Positions 4,803 through 64,000 of a DNA stretch of 64,000 bases are shown piece by piece. Below the pieces are notes generated by a model that did no database searches, was not told the origin of the DNA, and was given only the letters and a program-made list of their open reading frames with translations. The DNA is from Phallusia mammillata (lineage: Eukaryota): the NCBI GenBank assembly GCA_965637545.1, contig OZ281497.1:22320001-22384000 (forward strand). Direction: 5' to 3'. Numbering within the stretch: the first letter of the stretch is position 1; the number at the start of each line of letters is the position of its first letter. The position numbers were made by a program, and so were the translations under genes.

Positions 4803-7238
4803 TCAGGGATTCATCATATATGTTTTCCACTGTTTATCATTTCTGCTATATGAAACATAACAAACATTTGATTTACCAAACTTGTCAGCTAACACACTGG
4901 CAAATTGTAGAAGCGACGTTCTGGCTGTTTTGTCAACAGCCAATCCCGAAATATAACTGTAGTTCAAAGCACGTTTCAACACACCAGTTTTTATGTGAAG
5001 ACTTTCAGCCTCACACTCAAGACATGTGTAGTCATGTAGCAATGAGTCATCATTTCGAAGGGTAAAAATTACAGATTTAGGTGAACCAAAAATGATTTTT
5101 TCTGAGGGAATTGACAGTGGTTGGATATCTGAAACTCCAGTAAAGGTTCTAAAAATTGCACGATCAGCTTCAAACCAATCACTTGCAACGCGATTTCCTT
5201 CTAAATCAACTTTCTCTGTAAAGCCTGTTATGTTTGTGTTAGTTGTTGGATGAACTGTTGTGTGCCAAAGAAATCCCTTCTCAAAGCTACCATCCAAAGA
5301 GTAAAGGATCCTATTGCCACAAGGAAACCTGTTTGACTCCGGAGTCAATGCTGAAAATCCAAAGCAGTGCTCAGACACTTCAACACCTTAAAACAACATT
5401 TTGTTAAATACAAGTTGTTTTTGTTTATGTCCATAAAACATGCATTTGAGTAGATTACTAACTTGGATAGACCACATTGTTGACGCTGATGGGGCACTCT
5501 TCAAATGGAGGTATGAATGATGAAAGTTCTACCATGTTTCTCAGTTTACCAGGTTTATTCTCCATTGTTGGTTTACATGCTTCATCTGAATCCTGTTCAG
5601 CATTTAGTTCAATGAAATCAATGCTGTTCTTTTCCAAATAATCAACCACTGTCACATTTGAAAGATTTTAGTCCTAAGTTTTAAAGTTGATGCAAATATT
5701 TCTTATTACCATCATTAGCTGACCAGCGTTTGCTTGGGTCTATATCCCAACACGATTTCATGACATGATACAAAGTTTCGAACATAGACTGCATCACTTC
5801 TGATAACATTTGTTGCCTTATTTCCTTAAGTCCTTTTTGTGGCTTTGTTCCATTGTTTTTCATTGCAAACAAGAGCCCATCAGGAACTTCATATTCTGAA
5901 AATGGGATTGTCTTTGTGATGACCTCATACACCACAATAGCGAAACTGTATGTCAAAAACAAGTTATCAGGTAATGTTTTTAGACGTACAAGAAAATACT
6001 TATACCTGTACATATCAGCAAGAATCCTGATGTTTTCCGTTTCTGGAGCTGCATACCTGACTGTATATTGGCGACTTGAAGGAACTTCAGATGTGCTTGT
6101 ACTAAGACCAGTTTGACGAATAATATTGGCTGCACCGAAATCAGCTAATTTTACCACTAAATCATGGGTGACAATTATGTTTTCGGGTTTAATATCCCCA
6201 TGGCGAAGCCCACGTCCTGGCTGGTAGTTGTGTAGATACTTCAAAGCCAAAGCCAGCTGGTAAACCACTTTTATGCGATTATCCCAAGGTATTTCAAAAT
6301 CATTAGTGTGCAAGCAGCATTTCAGAGTCTTTCCTTCTACATATTCCATTATAATAGCCACATTGGTTCCCCATTTTGTCAAGCCCAACACCTCTACCAC
6401 ATTTTTATGTTTGACACGGACCAACGAGTTTATCTCTGTCAGAAAGCTACAAAAAAAATAAACAAGTTTTCTATTTGTTAATGGAGTGCAAAAGTTACAT
6501 CTTTTGTGATCCTATACCCGACAAAACAATTTTTCATGTTGAAACAAGTAAAACACAATACATACAGCTACATGTTCAATGACAAGAAGGGTATGATAGA
6601 AATTTCGCGTAAATATCCATTTAACTTGGAATCAAACTCATCTCCTCCAAAGCATAAGCTAAAACATTTTGCAGCAACAACTTGATTGCGTCCTTTGATC
6701 AGGCATTTTCTTACTGCAGCATAATTTCCTTTGCCAATAAAATATTTATCCCGATAAGAGCTGGTCACCAAGTTACTTGCTTCATACACCTTTGCTCTTT
6801 GTGAAACACCAGAAACATCAACCTTTGGTGTGAAAACAAAAGCAAAAAAAATTACCAAACACCCACGTAAACCCAGCCAACAATTGCAATTACTCTATAA
6901 AACTAAAAAGATATAATACTGAAATTTTGACACGTTAGTTTCTGATTTTAAAGTGTTTTAGCGCATAACCAAATAAACATCTTTTTATCATTTTCTGAAT
7001 TATTACAAAACTATTTTTGTATTTTTTTCATTTTGTAACAAAATTTTGTTTAGATATAATTGACACCACACTGTTTTATGGAGAGTCACACCTTCACCTT
7101 TTTACAGTCTATGGTGTAAAACGTTGAATATAGGCTATATATATATAAAAGCAAGTATACGTGCTTTATGCAATAGGTTTTGTGTAACTAAAACTTCTGA
7201 TATGGTTTTAAACAATAATGACTTACCTCCATTTTCAT
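4803..7238 (-). CDS. TKL (RIPK/IRAK-like) kinase type A, copy A1 (divergent). Exons about 7238-7227, 6822-~6620, 6446-6006, 5945-5710, 5648-5463, 5386-4803
   Basis: Motifs IGKGNYA, VAAK, FLTE, HGDIKPEN, DFG, YAAPE, DMYSFA, CW..DPSKRW, followed by a linker exon and a ~190-aa C-terminal exon. Splice sites match paralogs except the exon-2 donor, which is uncertain. Confidence 0.8.
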
Positions 7239-7800
7239 TGTGTCCTTGCAACTAGGAATGGTTGACATTTTAAATGTCGAAATGCAGTTTTTTTGAAACA
7301 AAACTCTGATAGAATGTAACTCACTGCCAGTTTACCAAATTAAAAGCCCAACTTAACTTAATGTAATTTAGTAGTGAAACATTTCTGACTTCTGTCCTCA
7401 AACGTAACAATATGAACATGAAGCTGTTGAGATGAGAGACTGAGAGTGAGACTAGTCACTGGAGCATTTGGATTTCGCGCCATTGAACAAAACAAACACA
7501 TCGACTCACGGTGTTTACTGAGCCATGACTTTACCGTGAGCAATTTTTTTCCAATGTGTAAGTTTTTTTTCCACATCTACCTAAATATGTTGCCTTCTAA
7601 GCTGGAACAACCTATTAGCCCTGTTTGATGTTTTTGTTCTCCTTTTAAAGTTTAAAGATTTTGAGACTTTCTTGGTCTCTTCGGCGTTTAGTTTAGTTGA
7701 ACATCTAATTCTTTTTACTGAAAAAAACATCATAAAAATGTTTTGTGTTTTTATTTGAAAATTTTTAATAAAACAATAGTCACAATGCACATTGAACTAC

Positions 7801-10050
7801 TTAAATTTGGCGGCTCTCCTTGTAAGGGTAAAGAAATTCATCCAATCCCACTCGATCTGCTACCCGACTGGCATCAGGAATCTTAATTGAGCTTACAACA
7901 CTAGTATCCATTTTGTCACCCAGTTCCTTCTCAATTATTTGACTAAGTCTTTTCTCCACTAAAAATACATCAGTTTTCAGAATCGTATGTTAATGAGAAC
8001 CCGATCCTAATCTTGGCCACTATGTCAAATTTTATTTGCATTCAATTGTGATTGTTGAACTTTTTCATAAAATAGTAAAGATACCAAAAACTTTGGACAC
8101 CAAGTCAAGTGTGAAATCAAGCATGAACACCAAACTAAACAAAAGAATATACCTTCAATAATTTTTGGTCGATCAGTTGGATTTTGTGACCAGCAGGATA
8201 CAATCAGAGGTTTCACAGGATCATCATTGCTAATGTGTTCCATGTTAGGTCGTTGCCCATTCATAATGGCAACAAGCAACTCCTGCTCGTTCATACCACG
8301 AAAGTCATTATACGCCAATTTTGCTGTTAAAATTTCATATGCCACTACAGCAAAACTGCAAAAAGTGAAATTTTCAGTCCATTAAACATTAAGATAATCA
8401 ATTTTTACTTCACATTCTTATGATTTGGAAACTAAACAGGCAGAATCAATTGTATTTTGTTACGTAAAAAACTCAACACAAAGAACAAAATATAGTTAAC
8501 TTATCAAAAAAATCCACCTGTACACATCCCTTTCATGGTCTTTGTATCCTTCTCCGCTCAAAATCTCTGGTGCAGCATATAAAAGAGTGTGGACCGTGGA
8601 TGTGTCCAATGTTAAACTCGATGACTGGCACCCAGTTGCTGCTCTGACATTTGCAGCCCCAAAATCAGCAAGCTTCAAGGCAAATTGTGGGGTAATTAAA
8701 ACATTACTCGATTTTATATCACCATGATTAATCTTTTTCTGAGAATCAACTGTGTGCAAATGTTTAATGGCTGCAGATAGTTGATGTATTAACTTCAAGC
8801 CAATACTTCTTGAATAATCGATTTTGTCTCTGATTATTTTTTCCAAGTTTATTCCACCAACATATTCAAGTATAAGTCCAACATTGCTGTTCCATTTGGT
8901 AACACCATAAACCTCCACAATGTTGGGGTGGTTTAGCCGTGGTATAACATTTGCTTCTGCTTTAAACCTTTGAAGAAAGTATAAAGACACCATTTTAATT
9001 TGGAGTCAACCTGCATTAAAAAAAGATTTAAGTTCTGCATTAGTTTTAGTTGTAATTTTCAGCTCAATGCTGGTCTCATAAACAATACAGTCTTTGGTTG
9101 TTCGTGTCCCACATTATTGCTAGTGACCATTTGTCCATTTGCATAAAAATAAAATAATGCAAACTTTATTTACTTATAAGCTACAAAAGGTACAGTAATA
9201 CAACTATAGAAATTTACTAACTACTGGACATACTTTTGAGGCAATCCAGTTCTTTTCAACAGGGCTTAGACTAGTTAGCTTTCAAAACATAAAAGTTCAC
9301 TAAATACCCTTGATTTAAAGGTATGCCAAATTTGTTTTGTTGATTGTCTTGTGCTAAAAAGATCACCAAGACAACAGTAAAAACAAAAACCACTTCCAAG
9401 TCAATGTCTCTGACATACAAATTGACCAAGCACTTGTTTTCATGCTTGGACCTTGTACGGTAATTTGCTTCCTGTTTGAATAGCCCCAGCAGGGCAATAT
9501 CACCCACTTTAGGAAATGGTTTAGTCTATGGTTGAGTAATCTGCACAAGATGGGGACTTTTAAAATTATTTCCAGACCAACATTTTAACCCAAAAACATC
9601 TGGTAACTTTAAGTTTTGAACAAGAGCAAGACACACAACACATAGACAGAGGTTTTGAATTTTTTTTAAAAACTCCATAAATTTATTCACTTTAATATGC
9701 ATTTCCAAATGCTGCAACCTGAAATTAACTTACGATTTCCAGCTAGACATCATTTCTTCAGGAGTGCCAATCAGTGGAATACACTTAACAGCAACTTCTC
9801 CCAACCTGTCGTGGAAGCAGCGACGTACAGCACCAAAACTCCCAGACCCAATGTAATCCATTTTATTATGACTGGTTTTCAAATCGTTTGCTGGCAACTC
9901 AGGCAAATCATGTGGCAACTGGCTCATCTATAAATCAATATAAATTATAAATCAACATAAATTAACTATTATGCGGTGTAGTTTATTTCAAACCGAGCAA
10001 CTTATTCTTACCAAGCACCTTTCCAAAACTTCTGGTTGAACCGACGCCAT
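7801..10050 (-). CDS. TKL kinase type B, copy B1 (divergent, kinase plus short tail). Exons 10050-10012, 9927-9734, 8967-8518, 8355-8153, 7958-7801
   Basis: Motifs IGSGSFGAV, VAVK, FKAE, HGDIKSSN, DFG, YAAPE, DVYSFA, CWSQNPTDRP; tail RVGLDEFLYPYK then stop. Canonical splice sites keep the frame. Confidence 0.85.
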
Positions 10051-12850: not shown

Positions 12851-12913
12851 GTATAGCCTACCGCAGGTAAAAACGCCTTTTTGGTGTGGAAAAGCTGGGA
12901 CTACCATTTAGAT

Positions 12914-14818: not shown

Positions 14819-17759
14819 TTATGCAGTCACCATAGATCTTCTCCAGTTTTCATCATTTGTGCTGTACGATACAAAACGTACATTTGATTTACCGAACTCC
14901 CCACCTAACACAAGGGCAAATTGCAAAAGCGTCAATCTAGCTGTTTTGTCAATAGCCAACCCTGAAATATAGGGGAAGCTCAGGCCACGCTTTAGCACAC
15001 CAGTTTCAATAGAGACCTTTTCAGCATCATAGTAGAGATATGTATCGTCGTCGTTTATCGGTAAGTTATCGTTCCGAAGTGTAAATATTACAGATTTGGG
15101 AGAACCCAAGTTAACATTCATCACCGGAACTGGAATTTGTTGAATTCTTGATGATCCAGTAAAGGTTCTAAAAATCGCACGGTTAGCTTCGAACCAATCG
15201 CTTGGTACACGATTTCCCTTTAAATCAACTTTCTCTGTGACACCCGTTATATTTGTGTCAGTTGTCGGATTGACTGTCGTGTGCCATAAAAATCCCTTCT
15301 CAAAGCTTCCGTCAAGAGAGTAAAGCATCTGATTACCGAATGGAAAACTGTTTGATTTGCTTGTCATTGCCAAGAATCCAAAACAGTGCTCGGACACTCG
15401 ACCAACTAAAAATTAGTAAAAAATATAGTTCGTAAGCAGATTTTGTTTCTGGTGGATGTGTTGATGAGACCTTTGCGTAACAAACACGGACATAACTTTC
15501 AGCTTAAATGATAAGAGAAATATAAACCTCGGTTGTCGTTGTTGACAGAGAGCCTGGATTGGTGTTGTTGTATTGCGTTGTGAACAGAGCACTCTTCAAA
15601 TGGAGCTGTGAAAGATGAAAGTTCTGCCATGTTGTATCCATCAGGCTGATAAGGTACACACTCCTTTGGTTGGTTTTGTTCTATGTCTGGATCTTGATTG
15701 GTATTGAGGTCCATGATATCCATACATCTCTTCTCTATAAAATCAACCACTGCCAAAAAAAAACACATCTTAGCGTTAATTTGCTCAAAAAAACTTAACA
15801 GATTCCCACACGTGCTACCAAGTGACTAACCCTTATTGGCTGTCCAGCGTTTGTTTGAATCTACATCCAAACATGATTGCATGATTTGATGCAAAATGTC
15901 AAATATACATTGCTGCTCTTTTGAGGACATTTTTTGTTTGATTTCATCAAGTCCTTGATGGGGTTTCGTTCCGTTTTGTTTTAAAACAAACAAAACTTGC
16001 TGAGGGACGTTGTGTTCTGAGAATGGGGTTATCCCTGTGATGATCTCATAGATGACAATAGCAAAGCTGAACACCAAAAACAAATAAGCAGTAGTTAACA
16101 TTTGTACAGTATATGTATTAATAAACTTTTATACCTGTACATATCGCCAAGTAGAGTGATGTTTTCCGTTTCTGGAGCTGCATATAATATCGTGTATTGG
16201 CTGTTGGAAGGAACTTCAGATGTGCTTGTACTAAGACCAGTTGCACGAATAATATTGGCTGCACCAAAATCAGCTAGTTTTACTACTAACTCTCGGGTCA
16301 CAATTATGTTGTCTGGTTTGACATCTCCATGACGAAGTCCATGTCCTGGTTGGTAGCTGTGCAAATACTTCAAAGCCAAAGCGAGCTGGTAAACCACTCT
16401 CATGCGATTATCCCAAGACATTTCATCGTCGCGCAAGCATTGTTTTAGAGTCTTTCCATCTACGTATTCCATTATAATGGCCACATTGGTACCCCATTTG
16501 GTCCATCCAAACACTTTAACTATGTTTTTATGTTTGACACGAACCATCGAGTTTATCTCGGTCAGAAAGCTACAAAAACGATATGTCATAAACAGGTGTG
16601 CATGAAGCATTAAAAAATTGAAATCCAATAGCAATACCTGTTTACCTGAAGATGAATAAAAATCAAAGTACAATAATCCCTACAGTTATAATCGGCTCAG
16701 ATTTTTTGGTTCGGGCTTTAGTTTACATAGGATCAGTGTCGGATTAAGAGTCTGCTGGCCTGTTGGTACATTTTATAAGTGGCCCGAAAATCAGGGTTGT
16801 AACTAAAAAAGAGAATTAGAATTATCAGATTTTTACTGATTTTAAAGTGGCCTGGATTTTTGACTGGCCTGTAGGCACGTGCCTACTTTGCCTAATGGTT
16901 AATCCAGCACTACATAGGCTATAACGGGCCTTTTCGGGCCTGACGACACTTCACCTTTTACCAACTTCTAGGCCTAACCCTGGATTAGTTTCGAGATTTT
17001 ACTCTCGGGCTCAGGCCGCAATTTCGAGACCACTGTAAACCAGCAACAAATTTTTGTGCAAATACTCATTCAAAATAGAATCGAATTCATCTCCTCCAAA
17101 GTATATGCTGTAACATTTTGCAGCCACGACTTGATTGGATCCTTTGATTAAACATTTTCGAATCGCAGCGTTTTTTCCTTTTCCGATCAAATAATCTTGG
17201 TTGCAAGTGGTCACAAAGTCACTTGCTTCAAAAAGTTTTGCTCTTTGCGAAATGCCGGTTATACTCTCCTGTAGCAACACAAAAGTTATGATTTATAGTC
17301 CATTGGTCGGCAACCGTCGGCCCAGGAGTTTGCTACCGGGCCGTCTACTTTTCAGGTGACATGCATTAAAACATTTTCCCCATGTATTCTGGGAATGATA
17401 TACTAATTAAGGCATTTTCATTGCTGAACATTTGTAGTTTTTTTGAAGGCCGGTCCGCGATATAATTTGAGTTTAAAAAACCATCCGCAGTACAAAAAAG
17501 GTTGCCGACCCCTGATTTAGACAATATAGTAACATTAAAAATTATATAAAATCAACACAGTGCAGTATATCGAACATAACAGGTGCTCTCGTCTCATCTA
17601 AATGGGAGAACGGATCTTTTTGTTTGCCGACATTTTGAACGTGACGTAAAACACTGTAGGCTATAGGTGGCTAATGTTTGCTTTTATTCCAAAAGGCCCT
17701 TACTTAAACTGAGACTTCAAACGTATTAAAATACTAATGTGACTTACTTCCATTTCCAT
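14819..17759 (-). CDS. TKL kinase type A, copy A2 (apparently intact). Exons 17759-17748, 17268-17066, 16569-16135, 16066-15831, 15749-15528, 15405-14819
   Basis: Starts MEME|ESITGISQRAK; motifs IGKGKNA, VAAK, HGDVKPDN, DFG, YAAPE, DMYSFA; 192-aa C-terminal ORF. All junctions are GT-AG and in frame. Confidence 0.85.
16734..16912. mobile_element. hAT-type MITE in A2 intron 2
   Basis: TIR CAGTGTCGGATTAA / TTAATCCAGCACTA; near-TSD CATAGGAT / CATAGGCT; absent at the equivalent site of A4. Confidence 0.7.
17301..17514. mobile_element. hAT-type MITE (GGTCGGCAACC family) in A2 intron 1
   Basis: TIR CATTGGTCGGCAACC / GGTTGCCGACCCCTG; right flank ATTTAGAC; paralogous to 63488-63678. Confidence 0.75.
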
Positions 17760-18669: not shown

Positions 18670-20221
18670 TCAAACCACGATCTGCTTGTAAGGGCGAAGA
18701 AACTTATCCAATCCTACGCGATTCGACACCTGACTAGGTTCAGGAATCTCAAACGTGGCCGTCTCATTGGTTTCCATTTCGTCACCTGATTCTTGCGCAA
18801 TGATGCGTCGAACTTCTTCTTTCACTGTAAAAGACAGAACACATTTTATGTTGACCAAAATTCGTCACTACAAATAAATGAAAGCGTGTACATATGGAGT
18901 TTAAATGGAAATCTTAAGCCTTACTATGATTTAATAACAAACGACAGATTCTTTGGGAAACATATACCGTTTATAATCTTAGAACGATTGCTTGGTTTCT
19001 GCGACCAGCAGGATACAACTATTGATTTCATCGGATCATTATCATCAATACGGGAAACATCTGGTCGTCGTCCATCTTGAATAGCGCGAATTATTGCCAA
19101 ATTGTCCATTCCAGAAAATTCATCACTAGCCAGTCTTTTCGTGATAATTTCATATGCCACAACGGCAAAACTGCAAATGATTTAAAGAAGCGTACAGTTT
19201 TTGCAATAGATTAATTACGTATTTCTATGAAAAAATCTTTTTTAAACTTTCAGGTGTGTTGATGTGGCTAAAACTGTTTGGTTTGAAAAACTATTTGCTG
19301 TTTATAAGTATCAGCTCACCTGTATATATCCCTTGTTTGGTCATTATATCCTTCCCCATTTAAAATTTCAGGCGCAGAGTACAGAAGAGTGTGAACCGTG
19401 GATATATCCAGCGTCAAACTTGATGACTGGCATCCAGTTGCTGCTCTAACATTGGCGGCACCAAAGTCAGCAAGCTTCAAGACAAATTGTGGTGTGATTA
19501 AAATATTGCTTGCTTTTATATCACCGTGAGTAAATTTCTTTTGGGAATCGAAGGTGTGCAAGTAGCTAATAGCGTCTGATAGTTGATGTATCAACTTCAA
19601 GCTAATACTTCTTGAAAATCGAATTTGTTGGTCTTCGATCAAATTTGCCAAGTTTTTTCCACCGACGTACTCAAGTATGAGTCCGACGTTGCTGTTCCAT
19701 TTTGTAACGGCGCATACCTCTACGATGTTTGGGTGGTTTAGCCTTGCTAATACATGTGCTTCAGTCTTAAACCTAACAATACAAACAAAAGCATCGACCG
19801 ACCATAACGAAAAAAACACGGTTGTTGTTATATTTTATTAAGTTACATCGTATTTTTGTAGGTTGAATTTGTGACATAATTTTTAGCAAGCATAAAATCT
19901 GCAAGAAATTGTTACTTACGACTTCCAGCTAGAAATCATATCTTCGGGGGTGCCAGTCAGTTCAGTACACTTCACAGCAACATCTCCCAACCTGGCGTGA
20001 TAGCAGCGACGCACAGCACCAAAACTCCCAGACCCAATGTAATCCAGTTTATTATGACTGGTTTTCAAATCGTTTGCCGGCAACTCCGACAATTCATGAG
20101 GCAACTCGCTCATCTGTAAATCAACAAAACTTATCTGTTTGCATTATATTGGATTTTAAATAGAGTAAATTATTCTCACCAAGCACTTTTCCATTTCCAA
20201 TTGGGTTTGCGCTGACGCCAT
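18670..20221 (-). CDS. TKL kinase type B, copy B2 (apparently intact). Exons 20221-20180, 20113-19920, 19772-19320, 19170-18968, 18824-18670
   Basis: Starts MASAQTQLEMEKCL|MSELP; motifs IGSGSFGAV, VAVK, HGDIKASN, DFG, YSAPE, CWSQKPSNRS; tail RVGLDKFLRPYK. Confidence 0.85.
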
Positions 20222-20812: not shown

Positions 20813-21637
20813 ATGCAAACTGATGTAAGTTTACAAACTTCGCCTATTTTTTACGTCTTGTGTGAAATGTGTGTATGGCAACCGCAATGAATTAATAAAA
20901 TAAGAAAAGATGCTTAATATGTTACCTATGCAAGCTTTTAACTGTTGTCATAACTGTGCTCATAAATAAGATGTTGTATAGTAAAGATGTTTGCTGGTTA
21001 CAATTCGACGCACACAAAAAACGATAGTACTAATTAATTCAACCCTTTTCCAACCGGAGTATATATTGTTTCATAAATATATTTAACGTGGACCGCAAAT
21101 TGCTTGAGAAAATCGTGTGGGGACCGTTATGACACAACATACAAAAGTTTGAGAACAACTGTACCAAAAAATCTCGCTAATCTAGAGTAGAGGTTCTCGA
21201 ATGTTTTTCAATAGGACCCAAGTATTTTAAAAATCTAATTTTATGACTGTTTTCGACCCATAGATATATGCAGTTTTATTTCCAACAGAAATAGGCGTGT
21301 CAAAACAATTTTCATGTAACCCAGGTTAGGGTCGCGATTAATACTTTGAGAAACACTGGTCCAGAGGACTGTATCTACTAGGTGTTGCATGTTGTAATTG
21401 ATGGCTGTTCATGTTGTAAAATTGGTTTAGGCCGATTTGCTGGGAGTTTCGCAAAGAGTACCCAAGATTTCAGCTGATAAGTTGGTTACTAGTTGGAATT
21501 CAAAAGATTTTCTCGGTAAAGGTGGTTATGCTTGTGTGCGAAGGTGCGAGTACAACAACGATTTTTGTGCTGCAAAGTGCTACAGCCTTACATTTACCAG
21601 TGATGAATTGCAAACTAAAACTAATGGGTAAACTGAC

Positions 21638-46244: not shown

Positions 46245-49200
46245 TCAAACCACGATCCGCTTGTAAGGGCGGAGAAACTTATCCAAGCCCACGCGGATAG
46301 AAGCCTGACTGCGTTCAGGAATCTCAAACGTGGCTGCCTCATTGGTTTCCATTTCGTCACCTGGTTCTTGCGCAATGATGCGTTGAACTTCATTCTCAAC
46401 TGTGAAAGAGAATACTCTATTCATATTGACTTAAATTTACCATGAAAAAAAGCATATATATATATATAACATTAAGCTCTACTGTGATTTAATAACAAAT
46501 ACCAGACTATTGGGGAAACATGTACCCTTGATAATCTTTGGACGATTATTTGGATTTTGCGACCAGCAGGATACAACTATTAATTTCATCGGATCGTTTG
46601 CATCAAAACGCTCCACATCTGGTCGTTGTCCATCTTTAATCGCACCGATTAATGCCAAATTGTCCATTCCAAGAAAGTCATTACTTGCTAATCTTTGCGT
46701 TACAATTTCATATGCCACCACGGCAAAACTGCAAAAGATTTAAAGAAGCGTACAGGTTTTGCAATTGATTAATTACGTATTTCTATGAAAAAAGCTTTTT
46801 TAAACATTCAGGCTTGTTGATGTGGCTAAAACTGTTTGGTTTAAAAAACTATTTGCTGTTTATAAGCATCAGCTCACCTGTATATATCCCTTGGTTGGTC
46901 ATTATATCCTTCCCCATTCAAAATTTCAGGCGCAGAGTACAGAAGAGTGTGAACTGTGGATATATCCAGCGTCAAGCTTGACGACTGGCATCCAGTCGCT
47001 GATCTAACATTGGCGGCACCAAAGTCAGCAAGCTTCAAGACAAATTGTGGTGTGATTAAAATTGTTACATCGCCTTGTACATATGTTTATGTTTTCTGTG
47101 TTTCCCGCCAGTAGCCTTGATTCGTGTGTATGACGCAGTGTTGTGCAACCTGATACATTGTCTGGCACACTATCGGTGATTGTGATGTCACAACTTTGAC
47201 ATTGTTTATTGGTATCACGTCTTGTAAGCAAGACCGCCTCGTGTTTATTAGTGACTGGAACTTACAGCGTCTGCATGCGTTTTTTAACTGGTCATTTATG
47301 TTTGTTTTTTATGTAACAAACAGGAAAATTATGCTGTTTAGAAACTGAATCGTCCAATGTGTGACTTGTATATTTAGTGATCGGTAAGCATATGTTTAAA
47401 CCTTGTTGTGACCTTTTGGATTTGAATTTATATGAAACCTGTATTCAGACGTGAATTCCGCCGTCGTCCAACCCCGTGTTATTCTGAACCGAACTGTGTT
47501 ATTCCGGTAAGATTATTGTTGCTTAAGTTTGCCGTCAGTCACTAGTGTGATTAAGTGATGTTTATATGTGATGTTATTAGATGCTGTGTTTACAGACCTT
47601 CTACTGATCGCTTGCATTTAAACGACTCCAGTCCTTTAATAGTTTGGTAAGCGTAAATGTCATTGAAATTCTCCTTCTGTTGCCTTGTCTTAATTTGAAC
47701 ATTTTTTGTAGAAACCGCCTTTTGACCCCTTGTACTCGCCGTGCTGCCATACTCTCGAGCGCCATCTTTCGGCTATATTGTAAAATAAAGAGTTCGTTAT
47801 ATAGCTGCTGGCGTCTTGGAGTTTGAGCGCAAGGAAAGGCGCGTTAAAGACAATTTTAGGAACACAAGCGATCGCCCCTGTTGTGCTGTCTGGAGGCGCA
47901 TGGAGTCACGCCTTCCGATAATTAAAGACAGCGCAACATCGTTTCAAACTTCTGGACACTTGAACACCCACGGCTTGTTGATTGACGTCAAGCATGGAAA
48001 ACTTCACAATGGAAACTGACAAAGGCGCCATTCCTGCGCCTGAGTCACATGACTCACTCTCCACTGTCGAAATCACTGACAAAGACAAAATTTCCAGTTA
48101 TACATACGCTTGGCAACAAGCTTGTTTGCGAGTTGAAGAATTAATGCTAAAAACCGAAAATGTCACCCTCGTAAAGGAGTTTGTTCTAGTGATTGAAAGA
48201 ACCTTCAGCGATCTCGTCGCCGCGTATGCCCCCTTTGAGGAAGGTAACGAAGCCATGTCTCAAGCACGACGGGCATGCCAACAGGATAAACGTGAACTGG
48301 ATTCCCGTGTACAGGAATGGTTCGTAAACGTCGAGAAATCCATGGGTCGCCACGAAACTCGATCGAGTTACACGTCCAGCTCCCATCTCGGTTCGGCAAG
48401 TACTCGCACGTCTGGTTCGACGGAAAGTTGCCGAAAAGCTGCCAGGGTACGGATGCGCGTAGCTCGCTTGTCGCGACAGCAACTCGACGAAGATGTCGCC
48501 TTAGAGACCCAACAAGCTGACATGCAAGCCGCTTTCGCTAAGCAGCAAGCCGCTTTCGAAAAGCAGCAGGCCGCCATCGATGCCAAACGAAGAATAAAAA
48601 ATAGGGACAATGAAGTCGCGTTGGCCGAAGCCGAGTTCCTTGCTTGGGACGAAGAGTTGGAGAACGAAGGTAGACCGGTCGTGCACAAACCACAGATTAA
48701 TGACTTGTCGCCACCGGTTGCATCACTTGGCAATTGTTCCAGGGAGCCCGTATATTCTCCACCACGTTCATCCGCTGGGGCCCAGACTCCGACAAATCCC
48801 GTAAAAATGTCACGCCCGCAAATTTCGAAAATGGATATAAAGCCTATACTTGCTCCTGCTGTTGTTCCACGTGTCGAAGGGTCGCGTACCGATTCCGACT
48901 CATATCCTCCATACATGTACAAACCGCGTGCTTCTTCCCCGCCTCGATGTGCTTCCGACACCGATTTCGTTCAACAACAAATAGTTCTGCCTCAGCCGGC
49001 CATCAAGAAGTTCGACGGCGACCCGTTGAACTACTGGTCGTTTGTTCGAGCCATTGAGTCGCATGTTCATCGCAGAACAAAATCCGAAGAATCGCGACTA
49101 GTTTGCTTGCTTCAATACTGTGAAGATTCTGTTGCTGACAAGCTCGAAATCTACAGCAAGGATGCAGTCTCTGGTTACTCTAAGGCGCTTTCCCGACTGT

Positions 49201-52200
49201 ATTATGATTACGGTCAACCACATATTGTTGCCAATGCTTGCGAACGCCGGTTAAAGCGTTTTCCGCCCGTTAGACAAGGTCGACCAAAGGAACTTATGAA
49301 TTTTTCTGACTTGCTTGAAAAATGCCGTAGTTCTCTGGAAGACAGCCAAGAGTTCGCAAGTTTAAACTCACTAGATGCGTTGAAGCAACTCATCCGGAAA
49401 CTTCCATTTCAGCATCGAGAGAGATGGGTGGAACACTCTTTCCAGGTGCTTGAGGAAACCGGGAGACAAGCTGGATACCTTGCGTTTACAAGTTTCGTTG
49501 TGCGGTGCGCCCGTGTTGCCAATTCACTGTTTGGGTCCGAAGCGGTCTACGAAGTCGTGCGCGAAAAAACGCCAATCGAGCCAAAACGGAGTTCAAGAGC
49601 CGCTACGTACAACGTCTCATCATCGAAGTTTAACAGGGCACGTTCTGACACACCGCCTGTTCCCGCTCCGTGTTGTGTCTGTTGTAAACTGTCACATGAT
49701 TTGTCAACGTGCCCGGACTTCGGCAAAATGACCTTACAAAAACGTCGCGAGGTTGTAACCTCTAATGGCCTTTGTTTTAAATGTCTTTGTTCAGGGCATC
49801 GTTGCGGAAATTGTCCCTGTCGAGAATCGTGCTCCGTTGAGGGTTGCATTAGCACCTTTCATCATACGAAGCTGCATGGTGCATTTCAAAGGAAACAGGT
49901 CGTCGGAAATGATGAGAACCCTGTCATGGAAACGACTACCCAAACGGTTTCTAGTATGAAGGCGTCCACCAGTAACTGCGGAGTCTACCTCAACGTCGTG
50001 CCGGTGAAAGTCAGACATAACGGTATCGAGGTAAATACGTATGCCTTCCTGGATCAAGGCTCTACTTCAACATTTTGCGAACAACGACTAATTGACAAAC
50101 TCGGCCTACAGTGTAAGGGTCGAAAAATATGCTTAAGCACGCTTACCGATCAATCTCGAGTGTATCAAGGTTCCACGATCTCTTTCACTGTTACTCCGCT
50201 TGGTGGAGGAAAACCTCTGGTCCTTAACGAAGTCCTGTCTATTGATAAAATTCCTGTATCGCCAAATTGCTTCCCTACGCCAAATGTTCTTCACAAATAT
50301 CCACATCTCCAAAATCTAAACCTGCCTTATTTGGAAGGAGGAACAGTCACGATTCTCATAGGCGCTGATGTTCCTGCAGCCTTTAACGTGCTGTGTACGC
50401 GTTCAGACCCACAGGGGGTCCGTGTGCTGTAAAAACCCCTCTTGGCTGGTCACTCTTTGGTCCTACATTTGATTCGTCCGCCACAGATGAGGCTCACGTT
50501 CGATACATGAAAGTGGCCCGGGTCATGCACCAACAGGCGGTCAAGTGTCTGTGGGAAAACGAATTTGGTGACGGGACCTCGGTATTCGATGCGCCTACAT
50601 CCAGAGAAGATCGGATGGCATACGACTTAATGAAAAGGTCTGTCAAACACCGCGATGATCATTTTCAACTTCCGTTGCCGTGGAAGGCTGGGCTAGAAAC
50701 GCTACCAGCCAGCCGCACAATGGCTGACAAACGTCTGGCCAGTTTAAAAGGACGGTTGTTACGCAACGAAGACCTCTGTAAAAAGTATGTAGATACAGTG
50801 CAGACCTGCATATAAAGAGGTTATGCGGAAGAGGTCCCTGAAAAAGAAATATCTATTGGCAAGCACATCTGGTATTTGCCACACCATCCCGTGTTTAATC
50901 CCCATAAGCCGGACAAGCTGCGTGTTGTTTTTGATTGTGCTGCTCAGAGTAAAGGAGTATCCCTTAATGACAGTCTTATGCAGGGTCCTGACTTGGTGAA
51001 TAACTTGGTAGGAGTTCTGACCCGTTTTCGAACACATCCCGTTGCCCTAATTGCCGACATTGAGGCAATGTTCCATCAGGTGCGCGTGGAACCCACTGAT
51101 CGCGATGCTCTCCGTTTCCTGTGGTGGCATGATGGGAATTTGAGCTGCTCCCCGACACCTCATCGGATGAAAGTGCACTTGTTTGGTGCGACATCGTCCC
51201 CTAGCTGCGCTTCTTTCTGTTTAAGGCAAACTGGGGAAGAATTTGGCAGTGACTTCGACAGTCGTGTTCGTTCGACTGTTCTGCGTAATTTTTACGTTGA
51301 TGATTGTCTAACATCTGTTGACAGTGCAGATGCTGCGATTGTTGTTCGTCAACAGCTAAAGGATCTGTTATCCAGAGGAGGATTTCGCCTTACGAAGTGG
51401 CTTTCTAACGAAACTCTGGTTTTAGACTCAATTCCCGAGGATGATCGTGCGAAGATTGTAAAATTACACTGTCTTGACGACACGACGCAGCAACGAGTCC
51501 TCGGGGTGCATTGGTCCGCGTTCGATGATGTATTTGGGTTCAAAATTGAACTACCGAGGAGGCCACATACGCGCAGAGGAATTCTCTCGACTGTCAGTTC
51601 ACTATACGATCCACTGGGATTTGTTGCTCCTGTGGTTTTAACTGCAAAATTGCTACTGCAGGAATTGTGTAAACTGCAGTTGGATTGGGATGATGATGTT
51701 CCTGAAATGGTTTCATGTCAATGGAAAAAGTGGCTCGATGACCTTCCGAATTTGCGTGACGTTGCCATCCCACGCTGCTTTAAGACATTGGTCTTAAGGG
51801 CACCACTCACATACGAGCTGCATCATTTTGCCGACGCTTCGAGGTTAGCATACGGCGCTGTGTCATATATGCGAATCGTAGACGGGAACAGAGCAGTCAA
51901 ATGCTCATTTCTTATTGGAAAATCCAGACTGGCTCCGCTGAGTACCACGACAATCCCGCGACTTGAATTGACCGCCGCTGTGCTTGCTGCAAAACTTGAT
52001 CGCTTGATGAGAAAGGAACTGGACTTGCCAATTACCCGTTCAACCTTCTGGAGTGATTCCACTGCTGTTTTACATAGCATCCGTAATGCTACGAAACGTT
52101 TTCCTGTGTTTATAGCCAACCGTTTGGCCGAGATAGAGAGGTTGACTGACGTTTCTCGCTGGAGGTACGTTCCAACTAAAGAAAACCCTGCAGACGATGC

Positions 52201-55200
52201 TTCCAGAGGATTACCTGCCACATCTTTCGTCGGGTCATGTCGCTGGTTAAAAGGGCCGTCGTTCCTTTTGCAGTCGGAAGAAAATTGGCCTGTGCAATCA
52301 GTGCCAACCCCTGAAGTTCCCGAAGAATTTAAGCCTCTTATCGAAAGGACTGCTGGGTCTTTTGCAGTCGATGTTTCAAGATCGACTTTTTCTGTTGATC
52401 GCATTGTCCAGCATTACTCAAATCTGCATCGGCTAAAGAAAGCAGTGGCTTGGTTGATCAGATTTAAGGCTTATCTGAGTCCTGGGATGAGACAGTCAAT
52501 CAAAAGCACTGCTCTTGATGTGTGTGAACTTGAAAATGCTGAATTGGAACTTGTCAAGTATGTGCAACGGAAACACTTCGGCTCACTGCTATCGTCTTTG
52601 ACTCAACGAGGCTGTCCGAAAAGGTCCGATTGCAGTTCCGCAGTGTACAAGTTAAACCCTATCCTCAAAGATCAACTCATTCGTGTTGGAGGGCGTTTAG
52701 CAAAGGCTCCTGTTGACTACAATTCCCGCCACCCTGCAATTCTGCCTGATCCTTCACATCTTACTGACCTATTGATTCAGGCGCACCATGAAAGCGTTGG
52801 ACACTCTGGTTTAGCGCACACTTGGACATCTATTAGAAAAAAATACTGGATTGCAAAGGGCGGCGTTGCTGTTCGTCGCGTTCTCGGAAGATGTTTGCCC
52901 TGTCGTCGTCGCAGTGCTAGACCAGGACAGCAAATGATGGCTGATCTACCACCGGCTCGTCTTGGTGTTGCTGAACCTCCGTTATCAAATGTCGGAATTG
53001 ATTATTTTGGACCATTTTTGGGGAAACAAGGGCGCAGTGAAATTAGACGGTACGGCTGCATATTCACTTGTCTTACAATCCGTGCTGTACACTTGGAAGT
53101 CGCCCACAGTTTGTCTACCGATTCGTTTATTACTGGTCTTCGTCGTTTCATCGGGCGCCGTGGAGCACCCGTTCACGTCTACAGCGATAACGGCACAAAC
53201 TTTGTTGGCGCAGAGCGCATCCTGCGAGAGTCACTACGAGACTGGAACCAGTGTCAAATAACTGAATTTCTCCACCAGAAAGGAACGTCGTGGACTTTCA
53301 ATCCCCCTGCTGCGAGCCACATGGGTGGTGCATGGGAACGGATGATACGGTCTGTTCGCCGAATCCTGTCTTCAATTACGTCCTCCCAAGTGATGACCGA
53401 CGAAGCTTTGGAGACATTGCTTGTGGAAGCTGAGGCTATAATCAATTCTAGACCCCTGATACCTGTTAGGTTTGATCACAGGGATGAAGAACCGCTGACC
53501 CCGAATCATCTGTTGCTGATGAGAGGTTCCCCGAATATGCCACCGACAATTACCGATGCGAAGGACTGCTACACAAGACGTCGTTGGCGGCAAGTACAGT
53601 TTCTAGCCGACCAGTTCTGGCGCCGATTTGTGCAGGAGTACTTGCCCGCCGTTGCTACTCGTTCCAAATGGCACGAGAGCCAGTCGAACTTTAAGAAGGA
53701 CGACATCGTTCTACTGGTTGACGATTCAAAATAAATGCCGTTCAAGGTGGTTGATTGGACGCGTTGTCCGAACTTATCCCGACGAATCTCAAAAGGTACG
53801 CACTGTGCTCGTACGGACGAGCGGTGGTGTGCTCCAACGGCCGATCGCCAAGCTTTGCCGCATCGTTGATTCTGACGAGAGCTTAACACCGACCTCGCCG
53901 AGCATTCGCAGCTCGGACTGCTAGATGGAAGCCAAATTGAGTTTTCATAACAATAACTGTCCGACAAGAAATCATCGCCTCATTGCGATGCACGCGCGAT
54001 TGGCGATGTTGTGTTTGAAAAAAATGTGTCACGTTGTTCCCACATTTTGGGTGGGAGTGTTACATCGCCTTGTACATATGTTTATGTTTTCTGTGTTTCC
54101 CGCCAGTAGCCTTGATTCGTGTGTATGACGCAGTGTTGTGCAACCTGATACATTGTCTGACACACTATCGGTGATTGTGATGTCACAACTTTGACATTGT
54201 TTATTGGTATCACGTCTTGTAAGCAAGACCGCCTCGTGTTTATTAGTGACTGGAACTTACAGCGTCTGCATGCGTTTTTCAACTGGTCATTTATGTTTGT
54301 TTTTTGTGTAACAAACAGGAAAATTATGCTGTTTAGAAACTGAATCGTCCAATGTGTGACTTGTATATTTAGTGATCGGTAAGCATATGTTTAAACCTTG
54401 TTGTGACCTTTTGGATTTGAATTTATATGAAACCTGTATTCAGACGTGAATTCCGCCGTCGTCCAACCCCGTGTTATTCTGAACCGAACTGTGTTATTCC
54501 GGTAAGATTATTGTTGCTTAAGTTTGCCGTCAGTCACTAGTGTGATTAAGTGATGTTTATATGTGATGTTATTAGATGCTGTGTTTACAGACCTTCTACT
54601 GATCGCTTGCATTTAAACGACTCCAGTCCTTTAATAGTTTGGTAAGCGTAAATGTCATTGAAATTCTCCTTCTGTTGCCTTGTCTTAATTTGAACATTTT
54701 TTGTAGAAACCGCCTTTTGACCCCTTGTACTCGCCGTGCTGTCATACTCTCGAGCGCCATCTTTCGGCTATATTGTAAAATAAAGAGTTCGTTATATAGC
54801 TGCTGGCGTCTTGGAGTTTGAGCGCAAGGAAAGGCGCGTTAAAGACAATTTTAGGAACACAAGCGATCGCCCCTGTTGTGCTGTCTGGAGGCGCATGGAG
54901 TCACGCCTTCCGATAATTAAAGACAGCGCAACAAAAATATTGCTTGCTTTTATATCACCGTAAATAAATTTCTTTTGGGAATCGAAGGTGTGCAAGTAGC
55001 TAATAGCGTCTGATAGTTGATGGATCAACTTTAAGCCAGTACTTCGTGAAAATCGAATTTGTTTGTCTTCGATCAAATTTGCCAAGTTTTTTCCACCGAC
55101 GTACTGAAGTATGAGTCCGACGTTGCTGTTCCATTTTGTAACGGCGCATACCTCCACGATGTATGAGTGGTTTAGCCTTGCTAATACATGTGCTTCAGTC

Positions 55201-55623
55201 TTAAACCTAACAATACAAACAAAAGCATGTTTTTTACCTTTTATTACATCGTATTTTTGTAGGTTGGATTTGTGACATAATTTTGGCAAGTATAAAAATC
55301 TGCAATAAAGTGTTGACTTACGAATTCCAGCTAGAAATCATATCTTCGGGGGTGCCAGTCAGTTCAGTACACCTAACAGCAACTTCTCCCAACCCGTCGT
55401 GATAACAGCGACGTACAGCACCAAAACTCCCGGACCCAATGTAATCCACTTTATTATGACTGGTTTTCAAATCGCTTGCTGCCAACTCCGACAATTCATG
55501 AGGCAACTCGCTCATCTGTAAATCAACAAAACTTATCTGTTTGCATTATATAGGATTTTAGATAAAGTACATTATTCTCACCAGGCACTTTTCCATTTCC
55601 ACTTTGGTTTGCGCTGACGCCAT
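46245..55623 (-). pseudogene. TKL kinase type B, copy B4, exon 3 interrupted by a BEL/Pao element
   Basis: Exons 55623-55582, 55515-55322, 55206-54934 // 47062-46878, 46728-46526, 46399-46245. The insertion follows YGDIKASNI. Confidence 0.9.
47063..54933 (+). mobile_element. BEL/Pao LTR retrotransposon, full length, defective
   Basis: 876-bp TG..CA LTRs at 47063-47938 and 54058-54933 (four transitions seen); 5-bp TSD AAAAT; purine-rich tract before the 3' LTR. Gag (KFDGDPLNY, Cys/His knuckles), protease (FLDQGST), RT (RVVFDCAA, ADIEAMF, FYVDD), RNase H (FADAS) and integrase (HHCC, DYFGP, SDNGTNF) lie in ORFs 47982-50432, 50393-50815, 50876-53734 and 53628-53924. Confidence 0.95.
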
Positions 55624-60023: not shown

Positions 60024-61813
60024 CTAAAAATAGTTAAAACATAGCTATTAGATATGCAAACATAAAGCCAGTTTTATTCAAAACAACATGCGTTAAAAAT
60101 AACCTGAGAGTAAAAAAGATAGCGAATCATGTTATTTCATCGTTTTAATAACTACTTGCTCCAAAATTTGCATTTGTCTAATTTTTGCCCCTTCGTTTCC
60201 ACACCTTATCTCATCATTGTTCCGTATCGTTTCTGTATGACGTCCCTCCTGACAAACTGAACCGTTTTCTTCCTTTGCTATTGTAATACAACCTATGATG
60301 ACTACAGCTGTGGTCTGTCATATTTGTATGTGTTTGCAAGTTTTTTTGCAACTTTTCAGTAGTAATCGTATGTACTTGATCTTTGCGTTATAAATTCAAA
60401 GACTTAGTGGCGCTCTTTTTAACTATTTACGGATTCAGTTTGTTAATGGATTCTTTTTGCCGGTATAACACTCTTTAATAAACGACTGAGAATTTGCTTT
60501 TTGCACGTTGAATTAATTCAGCCTGGAAACACATGGACGAATATGAAAACCGTGTTTGTGAGAATCTATTTTGAGTAATCCATGCGTAAAATAAACGTCA
60601 GTATGTAACGTTGTGAATTGTATCCTCTCAGGAATGCGAAATCACTGTTGCAGTTATTATACATATGAGTGCGTAGTTTATTCCACACTGTTGACTTTCT
60701 CACCCTGTACGTATTGAAAATAAACAAACTTCCTGTATATTATGCCAGTGATAGATAATTTTGGTGATTTAGGGGATGTTTTTCAATTTAAGACGAACCG
60801 TAGTAAAGTATTGAGTTGGAAATCTGTTTCGTGAAGTAAAGGCAACCTCTAGCAGAAAGTTATAGACGGCTTGAGTTTATAAAAATTCCGCAAAGGGCTA
60901 GTTATTTAAATGTGATTAACGAAGCAGCAGTAAAACTATTTCAATGTCATGTCTATTTTCTGTATGCTTAAAAACATAGGGTAAATCTTCTCCACTGTTC
61001 ATCATTTGTGCTGTACGATACATAACGTACCTTTCATTCACCGAATTTTAGCTTACGCAAGGGCGAATTGCAAAAGCGTCAATCTAGCTGTTTTGTCAAT
61101 AGCCAACCCTGAAATATAGTGGAAGTTCAGGCCACGCTTTAACACACCAGTTTCAATGGAAACATTTCCAACCTCGTCAAAACCTGCATAGTCGTTGTTT
61201 ATCGGCAAGTTATCGTTTCGAAGTGTAAATATTACAGATTTAGGGGAACCTAAATTAACATTCATCACCGGAACTGGAATTTGTTGAATATTGAATAATC
61301 CAGTAAAGGTTCGAAAAATCGCACGATTTGTTTCAAACCAATCGCTTGGTACACGATTTCCTTTTAAATCAATTTTCTCTGTAACACCCGTTATATTTGT
61401 ATCAGTTGTCGGATTGACTGTCGTGTGCCATAAAAATCCCTTCTCGAAGCTTCCGTCAAGAGAATAAAGCATGCGATTGCCGGATGGAAAGTGGTTTGAT
61501 TTGCTTGTCATCGCCAAGAATCCAAAGCAGTGCTCGGACACTCGAACTACTAAAAAATTAGTAAAAAATCTATTTCGTATGAGTAGATTTTGTTTCTGGT
61601 GGATGTGTTGATGAGATACCTTTGGCTAACAAACACGGACATTTATAACTTTCCGCTTAAAAGGTAAGAGAAATATAAACCTGGATTGTCGTTGTTGACA
61701 GAGAGCTTGGATTGGTGTTGTTGGATTGCGTTGTGAACAGAGCACTCTTCAAATGGAGCTATGAAAGATGATAGTTCTGCCATGCTTTATCCATTGGACT
61801 GATACGGTACGCA

Positions 61814-61998
61814 TATTTCCAAAATGTTTCCGAATTCGAACAACAGGGTATTTTTAGCCAATCACAACAGCGGAAACCTGCGGGTTGTCGTTACGTCACG
61901 TCTAGGTTGCTAAGTGGTGACTTTAACTTCACTATTATCGACGGTTCAAAGTTTTTTGTCAGTTTTGATTTAAAAATACGTTTTGCGGGCCAGAACAA
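61814..61998. mobile_element. 185-bp insertion in A4 exon 5
   Basis: Flanked by the 8-bp direct repeat GGTACGCA; absent from A2; no TIR visible. Confidence 0.6.
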
Positions 61999-63487
61999 GG
62001 TACGCACTCTCTTGGTTGGTTTTGTTCTTTGTCTGGATCTTGATTGGTATTGAGGTCCATAATATCCATACATCTTTTTTCCACATAATCGACCACTGCC
62101 AACAAAAAAACAACAACATCTTAGCGTTAATTTGCTAACGAAACTTGACAGATTCCCACACGTGCTACCAAGTTACTAACCCGTTTTAGCTGTCCAGCGG
62201 TTGTTTGAATCCAAATGCCAACATGATTTCATGATTTGATGCAAAATGCCAAATATACATTTCTGCTCTTTTGTTGACAATTGTTGTTTGACTACATCAA
62301 GTTCTTTTTGAGGTCTTTTCCGTTTAGTTTTAAAACAAACAAAATTTCCTGGGGAACGTCATTATCTGCGAATGGGGTTATCTGTGATGATCTCATAAAC
62401 AACAATGACAAAGCTGTGTTTGAAATAAACAGGTATTAATTTTTATACATTACATGTAAGAACCTCATAACTTACCTGTACATATCACCAAGTACAGTGA
62501 TGTTTTCCGTTTCTGGAGCTGCATACAATATCGTGCATTGACTGTTGGAAGGAACTTCAGATGTGCTTGTACTAAGACCAGTTGCATGAATAATATTGGC
62601 AGTACCAAAATCAGCTAGTTTTACTACTAACTCTCGGGTAACAATTATGTTGTCTGGTTTGACATCTCCATGACGAATTCCATGTCCTGGTTGGTAGCTG
62701 TGCAAATACTTCAAAGCCAAAGCGAGCTGGTAAACCACCCTCATGCGATTATCCCAAGACATTTCATCGTCGCGCAAGCATTGTTTTAGAGTCTTTCCAT
62801 CTACGTATTCCATTATAATGGCCACATTGGTTCCCCATGTTGTCCAGGCAAACACTTCAACTATGTTTTTATGTTTGACACGAACCATCGAGTTTATCTC
62901 GGTCAGAAAGCTACAAAAACAATACGTTATAAACAGGTGTACATGAAGCATTAAAAAATTGAGATCCAATAGCAATACACGATTACCTGAAGATGAATAA
63001 AAATCAACTTAGTACAATAATCCCTACAGTTATAATCGGCTCAGGCTTTTTTTTGTTCAGGTTCGGACTTTAATTTTACATATAGCTATAATGGGCTTTT
63101 TCGGGCCTGACGACACTTAGTTTTATCAACTTTCAGGCCCAACCCTGGTTTAAAAATCAACGGATTAGAGCTGAGTTTCGAGATTTTACTCTCGGGCTCA
63201 GGCCCCAATTTCGAGCGCACTAAGAACTATAGCAACAAAATTATGTTTAAATACTCATTTAAATTGGACTCGAGATCGTCTCCTCCAAAACATATGCTGT
63301 AACATTTCGCAGTCACAACTTGATTGGATCCTTTGGTTAGGCGTTTGCGAATCACACCGTATTTTCCTTTTCCGATCAAATAGTCTTGGTTGCAAGTGGT
63401 CACAAAGTCACTTGCTTCAAAAAGTTTTGCTCTTTATGAAATGCCGGTTATACTCTCCTGTAGCAACACAAAAGTTATGATTTAGAC

Positions 63488-63678
63488 CAGTGGTCCGTAA
63501 CCGTCGGGCCGAGGAGTTCGCTACCGGGCCGTATACTTTTCAGGTAAAATGCTTTAAAACATTTTGCCCTATTAAGGCATTTTCATTGCTGAACATTTGT
63601 AGTTTTTTTGAAGGCCGTCCGCGATAAAATTTGAGTTTAAAAAATCGTCCACAGTACAAAAACGGTTGCCGACCCCTG
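63488..63678. mobile_element. hAT-type MITE (GGTCGGCAACC family) in A4 intron 1
   Basis: Termini CAGTGGTCCGTAACC / GGTTGCCGACCCCTG; perfect TSD ATTTAGAC. Confidence 0.85.
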
Positions 63679-64000
63679 ATTTAGACAATATAGTAACATT
63701 AGAAGTTATATAAAACCAACACAGGAAGTGCCGTATATTTGACACAACAGGTTGCTCCCATCTAAATAGGAGAATAGACCTTTTTTGTTGGCCGACATTT
63801 TGAACGTGACGTAAAACACTGTAGGCTATAGGTGGCTAATGTTTGCTTTTATTCCAAAAGGCCCTTACTTAAACTGAGACTTCAAACGTATTGAAATAAT
63901 AGTGTGACTTACTTCCATTTCCATGGTATTCTTGCAAAATATACCAGTGGAAAAGCAAATTTCTAAATATTAAAAAACAATTAACTGAAACACTGTTGTC

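Follow-up and report, generated by a model that had tools for sequence, protein, structure and literature searches.

What does the repeated order of kinase genes in the genome of the ascidian Phallusia mammillata represent: a co-regulated signalling unit, or a history of duplication? The question is raised by a stretch of 64,000 nucleotides (assembly GCA_965637545.1, contig OZ281497.1, positions 22,320,001 to 22,384,000 of the forward strand; referred to here as the window, with position 1 as its first letter), in which three types of kinase gene, designated A, B and C, recur in that order. A preliminary description, made from the letters of the window, had proposed that the three types form a functional module that was amplified as a unit. 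The analysis reported here bears this out only in part. The window holds a real, lineage-specific and half-decayed tandem array, in which types A and B are alive and type C is dying. With a probability that we put at roughly 0.7, it can be read as an array of at least six units of cytosolic, RIPK-like, non-RD kinases of the TKL group, which arose by duplication of multi-gene blocks of about 10 kb and has been subject to birth-and-death decay.

Twelve kinase genes or gene fragments were placed in the window by tblastn (Table 1); the queries were kinase exons taken from the window itself and the public P. mammillata proteins P0001 (CAB3265597.1) and P0052. The loci occur in the order A1, B1 / A2, B2, C1 / C2 / B3, C3 / A3, B4, C4 / A4, with all A and B loci on the reverse strand and all C loci on the forward strand. 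Both the order and the orientation agree with the preliminary description, whose end coordinate of 63924 is the start codon of A4. Its spacings were likewise recovered: the distance between the B stop codon and the A start codon, given as 0.55-0.9 kb, is 562, 910 and 786 nt in the three pairs concerned, and B and C stand head-to-head in three cases, the B ATG and C exon 1 being 0.9-1.5 kb apart. The DNA of the window has a guanine-cytosine content of 35-40% and short GT-AG introns.

Table 1. Kinase loci and inserted retrotransposons in the P. mammillata window (ORF, open reading frame; LTR, long terminal repeat; positions are those of the window)
Feature	Position	Strand	Description
A1	4803..7238	-	554-aa open ORF; 6 exons (7238-7227, 6822-6617, 6446-6006, 5945-5710, 5648-5463, 5386-4803); model built against P0001
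B1	7801..10050	-	Intact ORF, 347 aa, 5 exons; introns all GT-AG; tail VGLDEFLYPY
A2	14819..17759	-	Intact, 564 aa; 6 exons (17759-17748, 17268-17066, 16569-16135, 16066-15831, 15749-15528, 15405-14819); introns all GT-AG; no internal stop
B2	18670..20221	-	Intact, 348 aa; introns all GT-AG
C1 exon 1	21431..21628	+	Found by tblastn with P0001 residues 5-73; separated from C1 body by LTR element
Ty3/gypsy-type LTR retrotransposon	21638..26566	-	Inside C1 intron 1, between exons 1 and 2
C1 body	26632..~28560	+	Kinase exons 2-3, linker, degenerate C-terminal domain; pseudogene
C2	34480..~36700	+	Pseudogene
B3	37650..39153	-	Intact ORF, 344 aa; introns all GT-AG
C3	40066..~42300	+	Probable pseudogene
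A3	44692..45458	-	Stump: start exon 45458-45447, exon 1 ~44922-44692; exons 2-5 deleted
B4 3' half	46245..47062	-	Rest of exon 2, exons 3-4, stop codon
BEL/Pao LTR retrotransposon	47063..54933	+	Inside B4 kinase exon 2, near codon 171
B4 5' half	54934..55623	-	Exons 0 and 1, start of exon 2
C4	57084..~59380	+	Best-preserved C copy, frameshifted
A4	60977..63924	-	Pseudogene; DNA 88% identical to that of A2

When the window was compared with itself by blastn, the similarity between units was found to extend beyond the exons and through the intergenic DNA. The segment 18102-21630, which covers B2, the promoter and C1 exon 1, matches 45671-47062 together with 54934-57283 at 88-89%, the segment 14833-17835 (A2) matches 60982-64000 (A4) at 85-88%, and two spacers, one that follows C1 (28664-29547) and one that separates C4 from A4 (60097-60982), match each other. 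Since the intergenic DNA is homologous between units, it was multi-gene blocks and not single genes that were duplicated. Simple amplification of the cassette as a whole, as had been proposed, is not supported, because the same comparison gave incongruent histories for neighbouring genes. B2 is nearest to B4 (88%), and the promoter that they share is 89% identical, yet the body of C1 matches C4 at only 76%, and C4 is nearest to C2 (82%). The units also differ in their losses, with C2 standing alone, B3 and C3 lacking an A gene and A3 reduced to a stump. The probable course of events is that blocks of about 10 kb were duplicated repeatedly and then underwent unequal exchange, deletion, decay by frameshift and retrotransposon hits, within two old lineages, A and B, with C as a dying offshoot of A. 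The repeated A-B-C order would in that event be chiefly a by-product of block duplication.

Decay is widespread, with seven of the 12 kinase loci visibly broken. Given the lesions in C1-C4, A3, A4 and B4, at most five loci (A2, B1, B2, B3 and, questionably, A1) can encode full proteins. All four C copies in the window are disabled, as read from DNA alignments of the copies. C1 has a -1 frameshift in exon 3, with several out-of-frame indels and a 33-nt deletion in its 3' exons; C2 has gained 5 nt after DFG and a TAC>TAG change at the end of exon 2, and carries a -1 deletion in exon 3 and indels in its 3' exons; C3 has a -1 deletion in an A-run of exon 3 and has lost 8 nt from its last exon; and in C4 a 1-nt deletion, seven codons short of the end of exon 3, abolishes the subdomain-XI arginine and shifts exon 4 out of frame. 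The A-run deletion, common to C2 and C3, is the only lesion shared between C copies. In kinase exon 2 of the C copies the ratio of nonsynonymous to synonymous substitution rates (dN/dS) is 0.22-0.35, at a dS of about 0.3, which suggests that the C genes died recently and independently, although gene conversion or some indel error in the assembly could contribute to these values. Amongst the A genes, A4 is frameshifted in the C-terminal exon and, in exon 3, has -2 and -1 indels together with an in-frame stop codon.

Two of the broken loci carry LTR retrotransposons. The Ty3/gypsy-type element in C1, across whose insertion site the homology of C1 resumes in self-blastn, has 278-bp LTRs that are 99.6% identical, TG..CA termini and a near-identical 5-bp flank, and it encodes gag, zinc knuckle, Integrase_H2C2, reverse transcriptase (RT), RT_RNaseH_2 and SH3_Tf2-1 domains. 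The integrase precedes RT and RNase H in this element, whose pol is split over a pair of ORFs that overlap (26224-24128 and 24153-21994); a copia-like order of this kind is that of the Gmr1-like gypsy elements of deuterostomes. The BEL/Pao element in B4 has 876-bp LTRs that are 99.5% identical, a 5-bp target duplication (AAAAT), TG..CA termini and two long frames, one of 816 aa (DUF1759, gag-like) and one of 952 aa (Peptidase_A17, RT and integrase). Once this element is left out, B4 has an ORF of 348 aa that is intact throughout, its tail included, has canonical junctions and is 87% identical to B2; the insertion is therefore the sole and recent cause of the death of B4. Birth-and-death evolution of the array, as suggested in the preliminary description, is thus well supported: copies carry frameshifts, one is a stump left by deletion, and two young LTR retrotransposons have inserted.

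The A and B types present a different picture. A-type genes have six coding exons, the first of which is a 12-nt start exon (ATGGAAATGGAA, followed by GT), and encode proteins of about 560 aa in which a kinase is followed by a linker with the motif VxLxxFxxPF and, at the C-terminus, by an orphan domain of 190 aa. B-type genes have five coding exons and encode about 347 aa, a kinase plus a short tail that carries the motif VxLxxFxxP[FY] at the C-terminus. Across their splice junctions the A and B models agree in peptide sequence with P0001 and P0052, and A1 is 87% identical to P0001 and B1 93% identical to P0052. Two of the open copies depart from the pattern. The last exon of B3 (37650-37792) ends in VGLDQFFALSK and a stop codon, the P[FY] end of the tail motif having been lost. 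Four introns of A1 are GT-AG, and the donor of intron 1, between the second and third coding exons, is AT; the junction (window 6617-6616) reads GG/AT where A2, A4, C3 and C4 carry GT. An alternative GT 45 nt downstream of the AT donor would add 15 residues just before helix alphaC, one below the 16 extra codons, as the junction codon is rebuilt.

Over the whole gene, A1 and A2 differ with a dN/dS of 0.28 and a dS of 0.74; by part, dN/dS is 0.25 in the kinase, 0.23 in the C-terminal orphan domain and 0.75 in the linker. Values for B pairs are 0.19-0.36, and for A1 against A2 and B1 against B2 or B3 a dS of 0.74-0.98 is combined with a dN/dS of 0.19-0.28. By these ratios, A and B are maintained genes under purifying selection, the orphan domain included, and that domain is constrained as much as the kinase. 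Together with the public proteins P0001 and P0052, the ratios suggest that A and B are functional genes. A1 and A2, the two intact or nearly intact A genes, each lie directly behind an intact B gene (B1 and B2 respectively), and this is the sole functional pattern that survives in the array.

Both public proteins are auto-named "receptor-interacting serine/threonine-protein kinase 1-like", and P0001 matches the Pfam Pkinase model at 1.6e-45. The translations of A1, A2 and B1-B3 contain the VAAK/VAVK lysine, the alphaC glutamate, HGDxKxxN, DFG and APE; with the catalytic residues intact in the models, A and B would be active kinases. The catalytic loop reads HGD in all A, B and C copies, and in an alignment of 28 family sequences H163 does not vary and D165 hardly does. 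As no arginine precedes the catalytic aspartate, the three types are non-RD kinases, a class associated with innate immune signalling across kingdoms (PMC8463890). Searched against solved structures, the A1 kinase exon matched RIPK2 (4e-15), RIPK1, BRAF, TAK1, RIPK4 and IRAK4, and the 28-sequence family profile matched RIPK1 (7e-54, 185 bits), RIPK2 (1e-50), RIPK4 (7e-47), RIPK3 (3e-45) and IRAK4 (3.5e-43). RIPK1 is the best single-domain profile match, a JAK entry outscoring it only through two summed kinase-like domains. The AlphaFold2 (AF2) model of the B-type protein, with a mean predicted local distance difference test (pLDDT) score of 84, had BRAF, RIPK1, RIPK2 and TAK1 as its top Foldseek matches. 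To judge from these matches and motifs, the A, B and C types are TKL-group, RIPK-like Ser/Thr kinases of the non-RD kind.

None of the accessory domains of the vertebrate RIPKs was recognized. The RHIM tetrad [IV]Q[IVLC]G was not found in A1, A2, B1-B3, P0001 or P0052; the C-terminal parts gave no Pfam match to a death domain, even at E<=10; and CARD and ankyrin repeats were absent from the Pfam results for P0001 and the precomputed Pfam results for P0052, which hold kinase models only. In the absence of RHIM, death domain, CARD and ankyrin repeats, these proteins are RIPK-like kinases and not members of RIPK1-4. No hydrophobic segment of transmembrane grade was found in the kinase proteins, and the cytoplasmic architecture first proposed is in keeping with this and with the lack of a recognizable death domain or RHIM. 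Of the earlier statement that signal peptide, transmembrane segment and death domain are missing, the latter two parts were confirmed, while for the signal peptide no predictor was run.

The orphan domain of the A type had no Pfam match at E<=10 and no PDB profile match, and the sole Pfam rows, obtained with a C4 exon fragment, had E values of 0.12-0.17, far below the cutoff. A word-indexed search of 5.8 billion proteins returned no homologue of the domain (residues 352-550), and in the ESM Atlas there was no usable match by features and all structure matches had template modelling (TM) scores of 0.41 or less. The AF2 model of the domain, built on six sequences, has a pLDDT of 54 and a TM score of 0.20 against the AFDB model of the same protein; VIA wide Z was at most 4.1 and nothing was found by shape in the AFDB clusters or the Atlas, and with so poor a model no claim of a new fold is made. 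No support was found for the domain as a degenerate SH3. A link to CHB_HEX was also considered, and BLAST and phmmer against two relatives that combine a kinase with CHB_HEX and GH20 gave no similarity. Such a combination is seen in metagenome contigs of ENA ERZ25067582 (P0044, L002:10001-13648, and also P0021), where an intronless ORF encodes an N-terminal kinase of the present kind followed by CHB_HEX and a GH20 chitobiase/hexosaminidase.

The post-kinase motif is the second distinctive feature. In A it lies about 30-40 residues after the kinase, and in B at the C-terminus. In the form [VIL]x[LIVM]xxFxxP[FYW] it is present in A1, B1, B2, B4, P0001 and P0052, A2 having AELSSFTAPF instead. The same form was found in 14 of 155 relatives, against 0.95 expected, in every case about 30-40 residues past the kinase domain; the bearers include Clavelina lepadiformis, Ciona intestinalis and four proteins from ENA or Logan assemblies. 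The pLDDT of the B-type AF2 model is about 86 over the tail (residues 331-350) and drops to 74 in the linker before it (residues 321-330). The confidence of the tail is read here as a sign that the motif may dock in cis on the kinase, and the C-terminal domain would in turn supply specificity.

With respect to relatives, an exhaustive HMMER search returned no protein more than 41% identical apart from P0001 and P0052, and word-indexed searches with these two recovered only the query proteins and unrelated kinases. In the maximum-likelihood tree A and C form a clade (100/100) with C as sister to A, and B forms another (100/100); both have long stems and fall in an unresolved polytomy with other ascidian lineages. 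A and B are about 34% identical. According to the tree, C is a younger offshoot of A and not a third class. No Ciona or Clavelina orthologue of A+C or of B was seen among the best database matches, which, with the long-stemmed clades, accords with the lineage specificity proposed earlier. The remark that this is not a described family holds in so far as a literature search found no paper on the Phallusia A/B/C kinases; it does not hold for the kinase domain, which is RIPK-like and whose A/B-type proteins already bear the automatic name "RIPK1-like".

The Phallusia genes share with a wider ascidian RIPK-like family, represented in Clavelina and Ciona, the HGD kinase (28-37% identical) and the VxLxxFxxP[FY] motif. 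They differ from it in their C-termini, which in the wider family are a Kelch propeller, TPR, a second kinase, Ras/Roc or possibly Sushi; neither the Phallusia orphan domain nor a one-to-one orthologue of A, B or C was found in these relatives. A kinase-Kelch clade is common to Clavelina and Ciona, and some of the varied C-termini may be fused gene models. The A-B-C order, which the preliminary description proposed to look for in related genomes, was not seen in Ciona or Clavelina, where the loci compared surround distant relatives of about 30% identity, and the metagenome matches P0016 and P0044, being intronless ORFs, are uninformative on synteny. What the related genomes do have in common with Phallusia is tandem amplification: Clavelina has a 15.4-kb repeat with a family kinase, and in Ciona the remnant of a second kinase comes after a kinase-Kelch gene, so that tandem turnover seems to be a trait of the family. 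Besides the kinase, the Clavelina lepadiformis repeat (OX392443.1, 21.24-21.26 Mb; 95-99% identical) contains part of a caspase (Peptidase_C14) and unrelated genes, 341, 301 and 265 aa long, in which Pfam recognizes no domain.

Compared with known systems, the Phallusia proteins resemble vertebrate RIPK1, RIPK2, RIPK4/ANKK1 and RIPK3 in having an N-terminal TKL kinase and a C-terminal interaction region and in being cytosolic, and public ascidian entries are auto-named RIPK1-like, RIPK2-like or ANKK1-like. They are set apart by HGD, a post-kinase motif of their own and the orphan domain, in place of RHIM, death domain, CARD or ankyrin repeats. A published survey reported no true RIPK1 (kinase with RHIM and death domain) in tunicates (PMC12119088). 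IRAK and Pelle are likewise TKL-group kinases of innate immunity, but the Phallusia proteins lack the N-terminal death domain, and IRAK4 ranked below all four RIPKs. The plant tandem-kinase and kinase-fusion resistance proteins (Lr9, Pm13 and WTK4) belong to an unrelated lineage and offer an analogy in manner of working, without membership; they too combine a cytosolic kinase with varied integrated domains in clusters with rapid turnover (PMC10260399, PMC11297308, PMC13478195). By analogy with the RIPKs, IRAKs and other non-RD kinases, a role of the Phallusia array in innate-immune or cell-stress signalling could be envisaged.

Outside the kinase genes, an intronless single frame of 955 aa at the start of the window (988-3855, forward strand), directly upstream of the array, encodes two BAH stretches and a C5 cytosine methyltransferase domain, corresponding to the C-terminal half of DNMT1. 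B1 and A2 are separated by 4.8 kb in which one would expect a C gene; a weak THAP-domain ORF found there (10867-11226, forward strand; E 0.0045, below the Pfam cutoff) is possibly the remnant of a transposon that replaced C. An ORF at 59506-59958 that looked like a C-type lectin found no Pfam support.

Several explanations of the repeated order and of the open frames need to be weighed against block duplication with decay. One is that A, B and C make up an obligate, co-regulated relay or partner set, a single cassette in which B and C would share a bidirectional promoter and A would be co-transcribed behind B. The recurrence of order and orientation would fit, given that the head-to-head B/C arrangement and the placement of A 0.56-0.91 kb behind B each occur three times, as would the 89% conservation of the B/C intergenic DNA between units 2 and 5. 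Such a set is nevertheless very improbable, as every C copy is disrupted, in contrast to the intact A2, B1, B2 and B3, of which B3 even lacks an A partner; moreover, the tree makes C a recent sister of A, and the histories of neighbouring genes are incongruent. Block duplication alone would conserve the order, and hence the A-B-C order is no proof of a functional unit. With every C copy disrupted and C merely a sister lineage of A, the three-kinase functional module of the preliminary description is not supported. A narrower arrangement, in which A and B form a heteromeric pair of sensor and helper, as in RIPK1/RIPK3 or the paired immune receptors of plants, and C is dispensable, is easier to reconcile with the state of the genes, since an intact B stands directly upstream of A in the two units whose A is intact (A1/B1 and A2/B2), both types are under purifying selection and have the post-kinase motif in common, and P0001 (A1-like) and P0052 (B1-like) are both nearest to unit 1. 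It is still rather unlikely: adjacency would be inherited from the duplication in any case, B3 persists intact without an A, and the argument draws on gene adjacency and sequence. The opposite extreme, a graveyard in which no copy is functional and the intact ORFs are recent duplicates yet to decay, could appeal to the seven broken loci, the non-canonical donor of A1 and the loss of the tail-motif end in B3. It is hardly credible, because copies with a dS of 0.74-0.98 and a dN/dS of 0.19-0.28 are far too diverged for their ORFs to have remained open by chance, the introns of A2, B1, B2 and B3 are all GT-AG, and public A- and B-type P. mammillata proteins exist.

A decaying tandem array of duplicated multi-gene blocks is consequently preferred, and a number of points count against it or limit its reach. 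The case for the copies in the window is built on sequence. The public proteins P0001 and P0052 match A1 and B1 at no more than 87% and 93% respectively, and other units or divergent alleles may be their source. For the C type, a dN/dS still at 0.22-0.35 in kinase exon 2 may reflect recent death, gene conversion or assembly indel errors, and the A-run lesion of C3 is the weakest case of disruption. RIPK-likeness is a ranking of matches and not a phylogeny with reference kinases, the immune role is argued by analogy only, and the putative docking of the tail in cis is deduced from its pLDDT in the model. A partnership of A and B and an immune role of the array are accordingly put forward as hypotheses.

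Tunicates are the sister group of vertebrates, and a RIPK-like, non-RD family that expands in tandem across tunicates and has swappable C-termini is a candidate for filling RIPK-type signalling roles in this group. A bolder and rather doubtful proposal is that ascidians, lacking a true RIPK1, use clade-specific, cytosolic kinase-fusion sensors with a self-docking tail and interchangeable Kelch, TPR or orphan domains, of which A and B of Phallusia would be a sensor/helper pair; if true, these sensors would have diversified by tandem birth and death, like the tandem-kinase resistance genes of plants. The orphan 190-aa domain and the conserved post-kinase motif provide two specific, testable handles on function. 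The array itself is a clean natural case of genes that turn over by birth and death, in which retrotransposon insertions into a kinase gene are dated.

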